Under the pieces are notes generated by a model. It saw only the letters and a list, made by a program, of their open reading frames with translations, was not told the DNA's origin and made no database searches. The translations under genes were made by a program, and so were the position numbers. A stretch of 64,000 bases of DNA from Hyphochytrium catenoides (Eukaryota; Protista; Hyphochytriomycota): NCBI GenBank assembly GCA_900088475.1, contig FLMG01002416.1:5267-69266 (forward strand), read 5' to 3'. Below, piece by piece: positions 4,748 to 41,200 of this stretch; position 1 is the first letter of the stretch; the number at the start of each line of letters is the position of its first letter.

Positions 4748-5082
4748 GCTAGCGTCTCTCTTTAAGCCACACAAATAAAGATCTATCGCCCTTTCTCTTC
4801 TACACGAGCCGGAATGCGTTTAGAGTATGACCCGCGAGAGACTGCGAGAGGAGACGTTCGAAAGATTGGCGCGCACTGTGCGGATGCTGAAAGGGTACAC
4901 AGAGAGCGAGCGCCACCATTGTGCATGTGAAAGTTAAGGACGGGTAGCCCCATGGATCCCGTTCGTGGGATAATAGACATGTTGCCCTCGCTGAAGTCTT
5001 GGCAACGACTGATAGCGGCTGAGGAAGAGTGGGCTCCAGCCAAGGAGAGACTGTCGCTGAGTGGTAGTAGACCATTGCTGTG

Positions 5083-7504
5083 CTACGTCCTGGGACGGTT
5101 CTGTCTCTCTTCACTCTTCTCTTTCCTCTTCCGTCGTCTCTCCAAGATCTGCGTGGCAGAAAGCGTCCGCCTTGTCTTCACTGCTACCATCGGCTCCTTC
5201 TTCTCTTCAGAAGTCGGCGATGTCACGTCCTCTGTCTTGGGTCTGTCCAGGTTAGGGGGAAAGCTCTGGTGCATTTGAGGAGAGGAGCGGCAGTATCTCC
5301 ACCAAGCCATAAACCCGAGAAGCCTGATGAACAGTGCCTTTCGCTGAGCTTTCAGTCTCTTCAGCTCCCTCTGTCTTGCTTTGATAGTGTCATGGTACTG
5401 CTTGTACCTCATCCGCTGCAGCTCCTCCTGCTTCCGCCTCCACCATTTATCGCCTAGGAAGGCTGCTCGCATGCTCAATTGGAGCTTCAGGGCAGGGAAG
5501 AAGAGGGCTGGGTGCAGCCGATGAAGGTCTTTGAACTCTGAGAAGTCGCATCTCCCGTCTCCGTTCTTATCCACTTGCTGCAGGACTTTAGGGACGTTGA
5601 TGAGCGGAGTCTCTGCGTGAAGGGACCGGATCAGTTGCTCCAAGGTCTCCTAAAGGTTACGGAGGGACGTCACTTGAGACCAGAACGAAGTGGCTAGCTA
5701 CAAAGTACTAGTGAAGAGCAAGCATGCTAAAGAAAAGCAGCTGACGATAAGGAGGAGACAGCGTGCTAGGTGCCCGGACAAAGATTAAGAGACAGAGGCC
5801 ATAGGCCATAGGCGGGCCAGTCTAGAGGTCTGACCATAGTGATATAGCCATTCTTCTGGACATCGACCACGTAGAAGGCGTCTGAGACCCGTGGCGGTGC
5901 ATAGAGCGAGAGGTGAGAGAGGTACAAGGTCAGCAGCTTGCTCCCTTGCGTGCAAGTGTTTAAAAGGACGGAAAGGATCATAGTGGGTGTAGAAGAGCCA
6001 AAGGAGGTGCTGATCGCCCTGTTCAAGAGAGAGGAAGAAAGGATTGAAAAGGGAGCGAGGAGAGGTAGGAAGATGAGGAACAGGGGAAAGAGAGATGGCT
6101 ATCAAGGGAAAAGGAAAAGAGCTCTGGTCTGTCGGTTCCTTACATTTCAATACATCCTCTTCCTCCATGAGACAGAAGGTTGTCAGTGTGTCGACGAACT
6201 GGGAGAAGTCCAGGGTCCCAGTAGTGCCATTCTCTATAAACATTGATGAAGAAAAGGGAGAAGCGACAGGTGCAAAAAGAGAGAAGAGAAGGTTGCATCT
6301 GGATGAGGCCGAGTTAGGGGCCTGCCAAAGAAGATGTGTGCTCACTGACCTGTGAGAATGAAGAGATGATCGCCAAACTGCGTTCTTTTCTCCTTGATGC
6401 AGCGATAGAACTCATCAATGTCCAGGGCCCCACTGCGACTGTGCCCACCCCAAGCAGGACGAGGGTAGCACCAGAAATGCGGAGAAAGAGAGAAAAGTAA
6501 AGAGAGAGCAAAGACAGGAGAGAGGAGAGAGAGAGGAAAGTGACAATCGAGACCATCAGCGAGAGGGTGATTAAGGAGGGAATGCAGGGTCAGAGTCAAG
6601 GACCACAAAGCGGCAAACCATGCCATGAGGCACATCTGTTCTACGTACTGCAGGGGAGAGAGAGAAAAAAGTGAGAGAGAGAGACAGAGAGAAAGACACA
6701 GAGAGAGAGAGAGAGAGAAAGAGAGTAGGTCGGGGGTGACGTTAGCCTCTCAGCAGTTAGAGACTTCCACTGTGAGTGTCGTACCCACCTCGTTATCCGC
6801 CGAGTCAAAAGCTGCCCGGAAGGTGATGAGGTCTTTCCCAGTCACTAAAGAGAAGGAGCGACAACCAAGAATATGAGGACTGCGGTTGAGAGAAGAATAG
6901 GGGGACGCGCATGAGGCAGACAAGAGAGGGCAACACGAGTCGAGAGACAAAGAGGAGGAGTGGGCAGTATATACGTGGTAATGAGAGTCAAGAGAGAACA
7001 AAGAGAGAGAGAGAGAGAAAGTGAGGAAAATGCGGAGTAAAGAACAGAAAAAAAGGATGATGGTCAAGAGAGAGGTCACTTCGTCATCAATACGAATGAG
7101 TAGGGATCGAAGAGACTGCACTCACGGTGCGCCCGTGCAATAGCTCGCTGCAAGCAGTCGTCCTGGAAGTTATTACTAGGAGCCAATCGCCCGTTGCCCG
7201 ACAGCGCGGCCATCGCCCGAGCCATCTTTTTTGGGACACAAGGATAGATAAGACAGCTTCTGTGAAAGGGGATGCTCATATATCAAGGTCTTTACTCTCC
7301 GTCCCTCTCCCTCTATCCCTAGAACTATTCCAACACCTAGCTCCACTTACTTTTTCTCTGTGCTTGCCAGTCGCACGGCTTCCAGACAGACAACAAGTCC
7401 ATCCCAGTGAGAGACCTTACATACGCTAGCAGTAGCGCACCTCCTGGTCAGAAGTGCCCTAACAACAGGCTCACCTGGCGCTGGTTCGGCACCAAGAGGA
7501 TCAT
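5083..7504 (-). CDS. Four-EF-hand Ca2+-binding protein (calcineurin-B/recoverin-like) with basic C-terminal extension
   Basis: Spliced: ...FRAAFDSADNDRSGALDIDEFY...ENGTTGTLDFSQF...YAFYVVDVQKNGYITMETL...VDKNGDGRCDFSEF...HPALFFPALKLQ...LGDKWW. The start codon is uncertain (7504 or 7225). The first EF loop requires the nested splicing described in the findings. Confidence 0.8.
6439..6789 (-). other. Complex intervening sequence: putative [D1,2] stwintron (internal intron 6788-6648 nested in the donor of external intron 6789 + 6647-6439)
   Basis: Exon...AAC GA | G [GTGGGT...GGCTAAC...(CT)n...CTGCAG] TACGTAG...CACAG | T CGC AGT GGG. Removing the internal intron recreates the donor GTACGT. The final mRNA encodes DNDRSGALDIDE. 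Confidence 0.75.
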
Positions 7505-8282
7505 AGCTGGAGCCGCTGCGGTCTATCTCAGAGAGAGAAACAGAAGACAAAGGAGAGAAGGAAGGCTGGGCAGGCTGGCGGGCGCAAGGGACTAGGAAGG
7601 GATCGTCGCCCCGAGAGAGGCAGATGCTGAAGGATGGCGCTCAGCTACCAGCACCATCGGTTGAAGAGAAGTATGTAAAACGGTAGTGGACGACAGGTCT
7701 CCCCCAGGAGTGATAGACTATCCGTTACATAGGGCAGAGAGCGTCGAGCCACTGATGACCTTACCCAGTGCGGAGTGCAGTGCGCCTTGCGGGCTTGCAA
7801 GGACCTGGCTGCTATTGATCCGTCAGTCAAACAACATGTTGGAGTTCGACAGTTATTAGAGGAAGGTAAGAGATGGAAGGAGACAGCCAACGGCGATGCT
7901 GATTATGGCTTACATTCCAGTCTGTAGCTAGTCATGCCATTGACTCAAGAAGCATCAAAGGCTACGCTCCGGTACTGTTAGCGCCCACCTGGGCATGAAG
8001 GCCCCTTGCGTGCGGTTATTACGACGGAGGGTGGGACTAGAGCACTCTACCCTTTTGCCAAAATTTCTAAGGAAGTGTCGGCGCTAGTCATAGTGTCATA
8101 GTGCATAGCAATCTTGAAGGATTGGGCCAAGTGTCCAGATAGTGTCCCCACTAGACCATGAAAGTGCTATGGCATGGTTCCCAAATAAGAAGCCGAACCT
8201 TACTACATGATGGAAGCGATAGATTTGAAGCATAGTAAGAACGATAACCCTACATCCTATCTGCGATTTTCCGGCGCCTCTC

Positions 8283-28235: not shown

Positions 28236-29037
28236 CGACATCCTAGTACCAGCGGAAAGGGGAAAGGGAGAGAGAATTGGTGAAGGGGAAGAAGGGTTGT
28301 CAAATTTGAGGAGAAGAACGAGAAACTTAGGAGCCGCCCATCCTTGGTACCGCACGCTTTGACTGCTGGAGCAGGGATACGCTTCTTCATGATCCTGAGA
28401 AAAATAGGGCTGAAGGAGCCATGGCGACAGAAGGCTTAGAAGCGGAAGACGAAGGGAGACGGAAGGGAAAGTAAAAAGAGAGAGAGACAGACGGAGAGAC
28501 GACGAAATAAAGAGAGAGAGCCACAGCTATACCTCCCATCGTCGGAGCAAGGCGGAGATGGCTCTGAAGGGCATCTCTTTATAAGTGTACTATAGGTCGT
28601 TGTATAGTGTGTGTCCTAGTGGCGGCTATCCCCAGGTGCCTGACGCGAGGGATTGTGAATGGCTAAGCTATATAAATCTATGGCCTGAACCAGCAGAGAC
28701 GCCTCCTGCAAACTAATGTGACCTGATCACTGTGCAGCTCACTAGTGTCAATATAACTGCGTTTATAATGTGTACTGGCACACACACGGGAGAAGAGGCC
28801 CCTGTTGAAGCTAACGTTATGTGCCTTCCTTCACCCTCCTGGTACTAACACTGCTGCATATAATGCAGCAGGTGCGGTAGGAGCACTGGCAAATGGTTCC
28901 AGTGACCCTGTTTCTGACTTGTCCCCAGCATGGCGAGGGAGCAAAACATTGGGCACCTGCGCCCATTTTATAGAGAGAATTAGGAGAGGATGCAAGGTGG
29001 CTGGTCGCACCCTTCTCTCCTCTGTTCTCCGATCGGC

Positions 29038-36602: not shown

Positions 36603-38225
36603 TTAAACCTTGTACAGTCGGATAGCTTCCCGGATCTCCTGTCGGCAGTAGGGGCAAAGCCCATGGGCCTCCTTGACCTCTATCAAGCACTCCACGCAAG
36701 CTACATTGTGTCCACATGGTACACAAATCCCGGTCCTCGATGCCTCGAAGCATACGAGACACTCATCTGAGTCGTCCTTGTCTTTTTGCTCCTGACTTTG
36801 GGGCTGGTTTCCAGCATCTTTCAGCACCGCTGCAGGAGGTGCCGAAGGCTCCGCATTCTCGGTAGGTCGTGGGGATGCCCGATTATTTGCATCCGCCACT
36901 CCTTCTAAGCGTACGTGAAGATGTGCAGCGCTGATGGCTAGGCCCGCTCCATCTGCAGCGATATCAGTTGACAGGCTCCTTTCAATGGCAAGACGCACCA
37001 ACTCATCCTCGTCTAAATCGCCAGGTTGAAATATAGAGACGTTCCTTGGCGCACTGGGGTCTGGATGGCTCCCTATCTCCGCCACTACACCTTCGCTAAT
37101 ATCCTGATGCAGGGGGCCCAACGGGGCGGACGGGATAACGCTTGGGCTTCTTTCTATGGGTCTCCCAGAAGTAGGCACCACCTGAACCTCATCTATGTCC
37201 GGGGAGGTGATAAGAGGAGCCCCGCAGAACTTGCAAAAGGCATCTGATAAGCCGGCTTCCACTGTGCACAGGGGGCACCGCCGCCCTGCTCCAGAAGATG
37301 TGGAGCCAGTGGCTGTGCTCGATGAGTTGGACCCTATGTTGATAAAGAGGGGTCTGGAAGCGGCGGCTGTAGCTTCATGCTTGAAAAACTCTAGCCATTG
37401 CTGAGTGTCTTGAGACGTGTCGCAGCTGATTGTCACAGCCGCACTCGCTTTCGTCCGGGTACGGTCGGTGACCAGGTCCTCATGATGTTTGATCCATTCC
37501 CCCACTTCTAGTCGTATTCCATCCTTGCACTGCGGTGACGAGCCTGACAGCCAAGACGACTGCTCTCTGATCAACTCAGGAGGATGGACAAAATTAACGT
37601 GAAACGTCCGGACGAGCGAGGGCTCTCCAACCGTGATCTTGGTATCGAAGAACACTATTTCAAGGATATCTGGACACCCACTCTGCAACACCATGCAGTA
37701 CTTCCGTTTCCAGCTGTTGCCTCCAAAATCAAACCCGAGCATCTTGTTCCAAAGTGATTTCGAGCTTACCAAGACCCACCCTTCCTTCACTACCAGCCTT
37801 TGCTGTAAGACACTAGCCACTTCCCAGTTCTTACTGTGCCGCGCGACATCTAGCGCTGAAGCGCCGCGAGAGTTCCATATAAATGGATTAGCCCCTTTCT
37901 CCATAAGAGCACTTACTAGAGAGACATTCCGGAGTTTGCATGCATAGTGAAGAACCGAGTTGCCGCTCGCCTTCTTCCTTTCCGGCATCCACTCCTCGAC
38001 AGCATTCACATTGGAACCGAGCTTGATGAGGTGAATCGCGAGGTCTGGGTGACCATGTTTGCAAGCCAGTAAAAGCGGCGTGCGGCCAGACCTATTCTTG
38101 GCCTCTAGATCTTCAACACGAAGTTCATGCCGCCTAGCTGCAATTTGCATCACCACGCTGATGTCTCCATTCGTGGCGGCCTTGATTAGCCTCTCTCCGA
38201 CTGAGGCGCTGGACGAATTGCCCAT
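36603..38225 (-). CDS. Ankyrin / PH-like / zinc-ribbon / UIM / RING-HC E3 ligase (XBAT34/35-like), copy 2; ORF is open further to 38522
   Basis: Paralogue of 26467-28235, sharing SGRTPLLLACKHGHPDLAI, LQSGCPD, LAIERSL and the ending GLCPYCRQEIREAIRLYKV. Likely start is MGNSSSAS at 38225. Intronless. Confidence 0.9.
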   Translation of the reverse strand: MGNSSSASVGERLIKAATNGDISVVMQIAARRHELRVEDLEAKNRSGRTPLLLACKHGHPDLAIHLIKLGSNVNAVEEWMPERKKASGNSVLHYACKLRNVSLVSALMEKGANPFIWNSRGASALDVARHSKNWEVASVLQQRLVVKEGWVLVSSKSLWNKMLGFDFGGNSWKRKYCMVLQSGCPDILEIVFFDTKITVGEPSLVRTFHVNFVHPPELIREQSSWLSGSSPQCKDGIRLEVGEWIKHHEDLVTDRTRTKASAAVTISCDTSQDTQQWLEFFKHEATAAASRPLFINIGSNSSSTATGSTSSGAGRRCPLCTVEAGLSDAFCKFCGAPLITSPDIDEVQVVPTSGRPIERSPSVIPSAPLGPLHQDISEGVVAEIGSHPDPSAPRNVSIFQPGDLDEDELVRLAIERSLSTDIAADGAGLAISAAHLHVRLEGVADANNRASPRPTENAEPSAPPAAVLKDAGNQPQSQEQKDKDDSDECLVCFEASRTGICVPCGHNVACVECLIEVKEAHGLCPYCRQEIREAIRLYKV

Positions 38226-41200
38226 CAGCAAAGCGGATAAAGGTAGACTGGCTTGTTCCAATGACTGATACAATGCGGGCAGGACCCTCTCCTCTACAAA
38301 TTTAGCAAGCTTTGTACTCAACCAGCTCAATGCGTAGACCGATGCAATGCCCACCCAAGCCTTGAGGTTGTCCTTGTTGTCACAGCGACGGCGGCGATAA
38401 TCTCTGCCCCTTTCCTCTCCTTCGTTCTCCGAGTCTCGTCTACGCCTATTAGGTCTCCTCGAGCCTGCACTACGGCCCAGCGTGAGGCTCAGAGTACCGT
38501 CATCGCCAATATCCAGCTGCATTTATAAGCTCAAAGCTCTGCTGCGGATCTTCACAATGTCAACCCTCGTCTCTTGATTCAGCGCTGTCTTTTCTTGTAG
38601 TCGTTCTGCCCAGGGACTCTTGTACCATTTGCTTGTCCTTCTGAGAAGTGTAATTTTGGGCAGTGCTTGTTCTGGCTTCATCCTTCGTACCCCACCCTCC
38701 TACAGTGTGCAGTAAGTACAGACCTCACAAGGTCTTGTTTCGACACACTTCAGTCTAGATAGGAACGACAAGATCATATCTCGCTCTGAGGTCTGATGAG
38801 AGGGAAAGAGGATCAAGGGATGCCTCTGTCTCAAGGTATCTACGTGGTGCTGTGCTATGTGGAGAAATAAGGGCTCTGCGTACTCTGGTATAGTGAGGGT
38901 TCTCCCTACTGTAGACAAGGTATTTCTTTACGACAGGGAAAACCCCATCGCTTCTGACCTGGGGACAGTCGGCGGGTGTACTTTCTAAAAGAATGAGCAA
39001 AGAAGGGTGTCACGTGTTTCGAGGGATGTCGCACACCCCCCTAACCTTGGCCCGCCTTGGTTGTGACATTTACCTTCACTTCACTGTTACAAGTATAGAC
39101 TCATTATATCGGAGTACCTCTATCTCTTCTCTCATTCTGTGTCACACTCTCTGTACCAGAGAGTCCGAGATCACTGTCTGCAAGCCCCAGATCTTCCCCA
39201 TGACATTTCTTGATTTATCGAGCCATTGCTTGTTCAAGAGTGGTGACTAGCTACTAATAATAGTACAAGTAGAACTTTACGGAGGAGGAGGTAGTAAACT
39301 GCCCACCATTTGATGAGGAACAGGAAGAAGATATAAAGAAGAAGAAGAAGAGCAACAACAAGGCAGCAGCAGAAGTTCATCCCCCCAGTCATCACCACCT
39401 ACCTAGTACAGGTAGAGCAGGCAGGCCAGGGGAGGCTGTTGACAGGAAGAAAGCGGTTGCGAGGGCGCGATTATTCAACCCTTTCTTCCTCATCACCAAG
39501 GTTGTGAGAAGAGAAGAAGATCTTGATGATTCACCTCCTCTCGAACAGCAACAAGAAGAAAAATAGTAGTAGTAATAGCAGCAGGGACGGCGGCGGCATA
39601 TACTTGTTGAGGAGAAGTAAGGAGGAGAAGGAAGGGAGGAAGAAAGAAAAGAGAGAGCGAGGAGGAGAAGAGCAGATTGAGGAGCGGCGACGAAGAAGGC
39701 GCCTTCTCCTTTAGTAGAGCCAAAGACGCCTGACCGATGATGAATGCCGAAAGAAGTGTACCTCGCTTTATAACGTTACACAGTTGTTGTTATTGGCCCT
39801 CTCTCTATCTCTATATCCTAGAATAGAGGAGCATCCAATTGCCGATCAACTTATTATTATTAGCGCTTCCATGTTGCTTGTTATTATTTTTTTTTCTTAA
39901 TCAGAGTCCTCTCTTCGCCGCTCTTTATTATCATCATGCTGCTGCTGCTGTCAAGAAGACTTGCTTCTTCAGTCGACAATGGCTTTCGCCCTTTTCAAGA
40001 CGCGCGTAGCTCGCCGCTGACATCCATTTTGCTGCTTCTTAGTTGTTCTTACGACAAAGCTCCTCCTTTGAGAGTGCAGAAGAATAAATGCTTCCTTTGT
40101 CTAAATCGGCTTGCCAAACCACCGTCGTAATGAAGGCTAGGGGGCTGCATAAGCAGCTCAGTACACAATCCCATCGTCCTCATCTTTGTCTTATTTAGCC
40201 ACGCAAATCCGCGCTCGTCGGCGGTACGAACAGAAGAGACGGAAGAAGAAGTGGTGTCGGCGGTCTAAAGATTTCACATTCTTGGTGGCCATAATGTGCC
40301 ACTATACTGGCTGGCTTCAAAATCCTTCAGTCTTTATTAGTAAAGAGCGAGTGCACCGAAGAGTCAAAGGCCTTTATAGTGATAATAGTCTTTCCAGTAG
40401 CCGATGATGGCCACGGACTAGAAAAGCTATAAGTAGCGATGTAATGATGTGGACGACTCACCGCCCGCTCGCCGATAACATTAAAGCAATGGATACACTC
40501 AAGATTGGCTTGCGACAAGAAGGCAAGACTACTCGTACTTGTAAGATAGTGGTTGCTTCAGCAGGCAGGAAAGCGTGTGCAAGGAAGAAAGCGGCCTCAA
40601 AGAATCAAGTCCCTCGAAAGAAGAAGTGGACATTATCTTCAACATTTTCGAGTCGAAGCTCTGTTTCGTGACCTTTCACATGATGGTCTTATTATAACAC
40701 TCTCCCCTCCCCCCCATCACACGTCGTTAGAAACACGACAAGCAGCCTTCTACATAAACGTGCCAACAAAAGAGAGAAGGGAACTCTATGAAGCTGCGAT
40801 CTCACCCTAGTAATAATGCCGCAAATGTAAACGTTGTTCAGATCTCCTGTTCGAGTATCTGTAACCTTTTTCCAGCTTTACGTATTTATTAGCCGTTTGA
40901 CAGAAGGGTTCAAAGCCCCTTTGTACGCTTGTGGAACAGCGACGACGACGATCTGACTAGATCTCCGCCAGCTGGCAAGGCGGAATGCTAACTAAATACT
41001 AGGCTGGAAGAACAACTACGGAGCAGTACTTTTCTTCGTGTTATTTGCTTCACCCAAGCTTTATTGAAGGGAACCAGAAGCTGGTATGAGAAGAAGAAAC
41101 ACTGAAGGAACGCAAGCTTAGTAACGTCTGTCAGCGTTCAAGCGAACTACAGTACGAGTAATAAAGCTTCCCATTGGTTTATAGAATGGATCAAACGTCT

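Follow-up and report, generated by a model that had tools for sequence, protein, structure and literature searches.

How can a gene be expressed when one of its intervening sequences opens with two successive Gs and cannot be removed in frame by any single canonical U2-type splicing reaction? This question is raised by an EF-hand gene on the minus strand of a 64,000 nt stretch of Hyphochytrium catenoides contig FLMG01002416.1. The entire stretch is called the window in the following, and the elements of the gene are described in minus-strand orientation using window positions. The first-pass annotation had proposed that the 351 nt between exons 2 and 3 of this gene constitute a [D1,2] stwintron, i.e. 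a spliceosomal twin intron of the type defined in PMC5639578, PMC6616335 and PMC12403724. Published [D1,2] stwintrons open with two successive Gs, and their proof is an RT-PCR (reverse transcription polymerase chain reaction) specific for the intermediate that has lost the internal intron (PMC5639578).

Our analysis supports the 351 nt interruption as a candidate [D1,2]-type stwintron, an assignment that we regard as reasonably probable. We also lean, if only slightly, towards the wider proposal that a stramenopile-like protist splices nested introns from the inside out in two obligatory steps, here on a long CT-rich intron and in competition with an in-frame microexon route.

Anatomy of the intervening sequence

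Exon 2 ends with ...GCG GAT AAC GA, its last base being position 6790. It is followed by a single G at 6789, the proposed nucleotide 1 of a split external donor G|TACGT, which is at the same time position -1 of the internal donor. The proposed internal intron of 141 nt (6788-6648) starts with the donor GTGGGT (6788-6783), contains branch-like CTAAC motifs at 6760 and 6745, the latter within GGCTAAC (6747-6741), and runs through a CT tract into the acceptor CTGCAG (6653-6648). The remaining 209 nt of the proposed external intron (6647-6439) begin with TACGTAG (6647-6641), of which TACGT (6647-6643) together with G6789 would make up GTACGT. They continue with a second CT tract and terminate with the acceptor CACAG (6443-6439). 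Exon 3 starts at 6438 with TCGCAGTGGGGCC, read as T CGC AGT GGG GCC CTG GAC ATT GAT GAG. Reading the region 5800-7600 placed every coordinate and sequence element of the first-pass annotation at its base, and its lengths of 351 nt for the whole interruption, 141 nt for the internal and 210 nt (1 + 209) for the external unit were correct.

Both units have the composition of an intron of their own. The internal unit is free of AG from 6746 to 6649, such that the first AG after the CTAAC motifs is the one at 6648. The external unit carries YTRAY motifs at 6599, 6593, 6574 and 6559 and lacks AG between 6636 and 6439, CACAG at 6439 being the first AG after 6636. The pyrimidine fraction by quarter was 0.46, 0.63, 0.91 and 0.91 in one half and 0.54, 0.71, 0.92 and 0.67 in the other. 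Both halves run from a mixed 5' to a CT-rich 3' sequence, which resembles the other introns of the gene. A self-trained hidden Markov model (HMM) that was blind to the hypothesis called 6788-6648 exactly as an intron. The 351 nt showed no unusual RNA structure (z = 0.21), and no Rfam match was found within the 64 kb window. No sequence resembling either half recurs in the rest of the window, which gives no hint of an introner family.

Splice routes and reading frame

A single splice from GT (6788) to AG (6439) removes 350 nt and, as had been annotated, shifts the frame, running into two stop codons. When all GT and GC donors and all AG acceptors were enumerated, none of the single GT/GC-AG introns with an end at 6439 or at the neighbouring acceptor at 6433 kept the frame. 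Excision of 6788-6648 followed by excision of the resulting 210 nt intron, which opens with GTACGT, yields GAT AAC GA|T CGC AGT and thereby a loop of the sequence DNDRSGALDIDE, in agreement with the canonical 12-residue EF-hand loop that the first-pass annotation had predicted for the removal of both units in turn. Of the internal AGs with a T behind them, only the one at 6648 divides the interruption into two introns of workable size, which makes the [D1,2] reading unique.

The sequence accordingly offers each structural element of a [D1,2] stwintron. The interruption opens with GG, the internal GT being placed immediately behind the G that begins the external donor (AACGA G GTGGGT). The internal intron has workable length and complete U2 signals, comprising a donor, a YTRAY branch element and a YAG acceptor. 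Its excision in silico rebuilds GTACGT, and the external intron possesses a branch element and an acceptor of its own. No single canonical U2 reaction removes the whole sequence in frame. The claim that the locus matches the stwintron definition thus holds at the level of the sequence, and the mature mRNA and the intermediate that it entails are predicted. On balance a [D1,2] stwintron is a plausible and the best-supported reading.

In the proposed mechanism a U2-type spliceosome would first remove the 141 nt intron 6788-6648, in which the strongest donor is matched to the AG that comes first after the branch region. This would join G6789 to TACGT and create the donor GA|GTACGT, which would then be used with the next available AG, CACAG at 6439, such that 210 nt are removed. 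The product would be GAT AAC GA|T CGC AGT, encoding the canonical loop DNDRSGALDIDE. What we show is the DNA sequence, that one canonical step offers no correct solution, and that the product fits the protein family; that the splices occur in this order and leave this mature junction is inferred. Minor in-frame by-products would be likely: a form containing a 14 nt microexon (+5 residues, see below), a form using TCGCAG at 6433 (-2 residues) and a form retaining the external intron.

Two features of the locus concern these by-products. The in-frame acceptors CACAG (6439) and TCGCAG (6433) stand in tandem, 6 nt apart (6433-6443), and use of the distal one would remove Arg-Ser from the EF loop. 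Retention of 6647-6439 after excision of 6788-6648 would be in frame and stop-free over 70 CT-rich codons, including G6789, and such an isoform would not be a target of nonsense-mediated decay.

Other intron classes were considered and rejected. An [A2,3] stwintron is ruled out, since exon 3 begins with T rather than with G (rule from PMC5639578). The interruption is also not of the U12 type: its 5' end reads GGTGGGTACG, RTATCCTT is absent at 6789 and there is no TCCTTAAC-like branch site near the 3' end. Finally, the internal site is not a classical recursive splice site AG|GTRAGT. It reads CAG|TACGT, which means that the G must be supplied from the upstream side.

Chance occurrence and donor strength

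A suitably placed internal site would seldom arise by chance. Of 20,000 shuffles of the intron body with dinucleotides preserved and ends fixed, 2.5% contained an AG|TRNGT at an internal position where it could be used, and 0.8% the stricter pattern TAHGT/TGAGT. From the window-wide frequency of AG|TRNGT, 0.13 occurrences per 250 nt would be expected.

Pairing with U1 was predicted with the textbook U1 5' end, which may not be that of this organism. On this basis the internal donor is the strongest of the gene (-11.4 kcal/mol). The reconstituted donor CGA|GTACGT reaches -3.2 kcal/mol, compared to -4.8 and -3.9 kcal/mol for introns 4 and 5, while GAT|GTGCCT, the donor of the 14 nt microexon, is the weakest of the gene with -0.4 kcal/mol. 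A donor matrix was in addition obtained from the self-trained HMM, which is crude, includes many doubtful intron calls and provides a rough guide only; in this matrix position +5 is G in 55% and C in 5% of the calls, and GTACGT scores about 15-fold above GTGCCT. An HMM lacking a donor model was dropped, as its donors slid into CT tracts, and counting of GT hexamers yielded no donor consensus. The self-trained HMM also called one 'GG donor', at 28536 (28395-28536, minus strand), which turned out to be an artefact: a canonical donor GAG|GTATAG lies 3 nt downstream, and this is not a second non-canonical case.

Possible competition with a microexon

The shortest realistic canonical alternative is formed by two ordinary introns, 6788-6648 and 6633-6439, that flank a constitutive 14 nt microexon TACGTAGAACAGAT (6647-6634), followed by the weak donor GTGCCT (6633-6628). 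As the first-pass annotation had stated, this route gives DNEYVEQIRSG. We found it to be in frame and free of stops, with the protein sequence DNEYVEQIRSGALDIDE and an EF loop into which five residues are inserted and whose position 3 is Glu. With AG| on one side and |GT on the other, the segment demands canonical one-step reactions only. We nevertheless consider it unlikely that this is how the gene is normally spliced.

The last exon was used as a query against 1.84 billion representative proteins and retrieved 351 homologues (E-value ≤ 0.001), of which the best 150 were used. Among these 150 the closest matches were 32-44% identical. The full gene model matched many homologues over residues ~20-250 (phmmer). 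Of the 64 aligned homologues that cover EF-hand 1, 63 have a first loop of 12 residues, for which DKDRSGTIDIDEF is typical. D occupies loop position 1 in 60 of the 64 sequences and position 3 in 41, and G occupies position 6 in 53. The remaining homologue, P0114, has a 5-residue insert at the same spot, as the microexon product would, along with degenerate loop residues. A family HMM built from the homologues alone scored the two-step product with 233.1 bits and the microexon product with 222.1 bits, i.e. 11 bits lower. Exons 2 and 3 moreover retain every canonical loop residue, something that would serve no purpose in a disrupted loop. Homology therefore strongly favours AACGA|TCGCAGT as the predicted mature junction.

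The nucleotide sequence argues against the microexon as well. Its donor has no G at +5 and falls behind GTACGT in both estimates given above, and that a microexon should start with TACGT right behind an exon-final G would be a coincidence of about 1 in 100.

Direct removal and sequence error as unlikely alternatives

Alternatively, the 351 nt could be spliced out directly as a GG-AG intron by a spliceosome that tolerates donors other than GT. This would produce the same mature mRNA as a [D1,2] stwintron but no intermediate, and U1 could indeed pair well across GAGGTGGGT in a shifted register (-9.7 kcal/mol). We regard this explanation as very unlikely. GG-AG is among the rarest of the reported intron termini, and direct splicing would turn the internal AG|TACGT into a coincidence at the 2.5% level given above while leaving the bipartite, two-intron composition unexplained. 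Furthermore, the first AG past the CTAAC motifs is that of the internal unit and not the one at 6439.

The bases at the start of the interruption were compared with contigs from three DNA-like sequencing runs of the same organism label over 5000-7400. The contig from run X1 spans 6734-6988 without gaps at a depth that equals both haplotypes summed, and a contig from run X2 includes 6788-6790. Both Gs are present in these independent contigs, which makes a one-base assembly error at 6788-6790, a possibility named in the first-pass annotation, unlikely.

Heterozygosity of the samples is evident from paired allelic contigs of similar depth (5700-7120), and single-nucleotide polymorphisms (SNPs) are dense in the introns. 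Seven exon variants were found, of which five are synonymous and two conservative, compared to 21 SNPs and all five indels in the introns. Three of the synonymous variants lie downstream of the odd junction, in codons 97, 232 and 261. The intron indels include +GCAGG after 6583 as well as +GCA and +T at 7118-7119. The segment 6439-6633 alone holds 10 SNPs and two indels, as expected for non-coding sequence. The predominance of synonymous changes among the exon variants shows that purifying selection acts on the gene in the reading frame common to the two-step and the microexon routes. X1 and X2 also differ at fixed sites, and the window is therefore a haplotype mosaic.

Least probable of all is that an ancestrally plain 350 nt GT-AG intron has suffered a genuine frameshift of one base, as in a null or decaying allele, or that the sequence is in error. 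In favour of this, deletion of a G at 6788-6789 would leave a perfect intron GA|GTGGGT...CACAG|T, and an X2 contig ends at 6788. The explanation conflicts with the gap-free X1 contig at both-haplotype depth, with the two Gs in X2 and with the synonymous downstream variants in the expected frame, and it would again make the internal AG|TACGT a coincidence.

Evidence weighing against a stwintron

A number of observations count against assigning the interruption to the [D1,2] stwintrons. The product of the two-step route is a prediction from the DNA sequence, and two metagenome scans, for the junction with a gap of 0-16 nt and for a 29-mer of the last exon, returned no match. The protein of the gene itself is absent from large protein collections, including a representative library at 50% identity, and a separate homologue search with the last exon returned no protein within the length limits applied. 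The reconstituted donor CGA|GTACGT has a poor exon-side context and a merely moderate predicted U1 pairing, and the qualifications attached above to the U1 sequence and to the donor matrix apply here, as does the intact frame of the microexon route. At exon 2, the Logan contig of X2 breaks off precisely at 6788; at 6787-6788, where the T of the internal donor GT is located, the X2 assembly graph branches or stops. No variant is listed at this position, and X1 continues through it.

Comparison with homologues does not support the intron itself either. The homologues of Choristocarpus and Phaeothamnion, two intron-containing ochrophytes, have no intron in loop 1, such that the phase-2 intron in the third loop residue, which the first-pass annotation had suggested to look for in orthologues, was absent from both. 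The position of the putative stwintron hence looks lineage-specific.

Relation to known splicing systems

The closest known elements are the [D1,2] stwintrons of Ascomycota, namely Pezizomycotina and Lipomyces, which were reported by Flipphi, Fekete, Karaffa and co-workers (PMC5639578, PMC12403724, PMC9024468, PMC7138796). Such introns have so far been described only in fungi, and all 12 papers of the searched library that use the term stwintron treat or cite fungal cases. The ascomycete elements share with the present locus the GG start, the complete U2 intron that separates the first nucleotide of another donor from the second, the canonical donor rebuilt by excision (here GTACGT) and the failure of one-step canonical excision to yield the frame. 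They differ in several respects. The host is in the present case probably a stramenopile protist, and the anatomy was deduced from genomic DNA. The units are longer, with 141 and 210 nt compared to ~50-60 nt each in Aspergillus. They contain long CT tracts, their branch-like motifs are far from the acceptor and there are no similar sister copies in the window.

Recursive splicing at ratchet points and at RS-exons in Drosophila and vertebrates (PMC5126111, PMC6224609) resembles the mechanism proposed here in that an intron is removed stepwise in 5' to 3' direction and that the first splice makes a new 5' splice site. The 14 nt segment with its own GT, which would compete with the regenerated site, is reminiscent of an RS-exon. 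At a classical recursive site AG|GTRAGT the regenerated GT lies wholly downstream and no exon base is lost, whereas here the G would come from the upstream side, shifted by one base. The introns concerned are also tens of kilobases long, compared to 351 nt.

Microexons of intron-rich eukaryotes (≤ 15 nt) are matched by the length of 14 nt, the conserved frame and the AG| and |GT bounds of the internal segment. The segment differs in that its inclusion would disrupt a conserved Ca-binding loop of 12 residues and in that the donor behind it is very weak. Non-canonical U2 introns with GA-AG or GC-AG termini, as found e.g. in dinoflagellates, and U12-type introns have in common with the interruption that the apparent termini are not GT-AG. 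The locus departs from these classes in that a U12 5' consensus is missing at 6789 and that its internal structure points to two introns. To our knowledge, GG is not a recognised alternative donor class.

If the stwintron reading is true, stwintrons would not be a fungal peculiarity but rather a general outcome of splicing by intron definition. Confirmation in a distant eukaryotic supergroup would imply that donor-splitting nested introns arise wherever splice sites pair across introns. It would represent a known kind of intron in a new lineage, with a mechanism that is already known in fungi. Gene finders would systematically mis-model such genes, and apparent GG-AG introns in protist genomes would merit re-examination as two-step events. 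For the protein, the microexon route would switch off the Ca-binding loop. The choice between the reconstituted donor and the donor of the microexon would thus decide on Ca binding by EF-hand 1, which makes it a simple and testable case of splice-site competition.

Gene model, homologues and host

The complete gene (5083..7225) is modelled with six exons at 7225-7126, 6844-6790, 6438-6350, 6233-6144, 5881-5835 and 5649-5083, with the stop codon TAG at 5085-5083. It encodes an EF-hand protein of 315 residues with a basic C-terminal tail. Exon 2 (6790..6844) aligns with the homologues. Its translation reads ..LITFRAAFDSADN, after which it supplies bases 1 and 2 of the Asp codon for the third loop residue. 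Exon 3 (6350..6438) encodes (D)RSGALDIDEFYRCIKEKRTQFGDHLFILT and contains the second in-frame acceptor TCGCAG that ends at 6433. Apart from the interruption, the gene has four introns, all of the ordinary GT-AG type, with lengths of 116-281 nt and the donors GTGAGT, GTCAGT, GTAAGG and GTCAGA. Among them, intron 3 (6234-6349), located after ...FILT between EF-hands 1 and 2, lies near the first intron of the Choristocarpus and Phaeothamnion homologues (L004:1217-1356; L005:1204-1351) and may represent an old position shared with these ochrophytes.

The homologues originate from marine metatranscriptome and metagenome contigs with uninterrupted frames and from Mucochytrium quahogii, Cantina marsupialis, Choristocarpus tenellus and Phaeothamnion confervicola. 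The closest ones are found on intron-free transcript contigs. An intron-free homologue is also present on a genomic contig of a marine metagenome (L003:2430-3460; 80 kb, long-read, polished), in which the frameshifts look like assembly errors.

The first-pass annotation had called the gene non-fungal, which is plausible: two genes in the window have their nearest homologues in stramenopiles (Mucochytrium, Cantina, Choristocarpus, Phaeothamnion and Achlya), and for this reason the host is probably a stramenopile. The second of these genes (36606-38522, minus strand) is a single open reading frame of 639 residues with ankyrin repeats and a C-terminal C3HC4 RING finger. Its best homologue is from the oomycete Achlya hypogyna, with 33% identity over 25% of the query.

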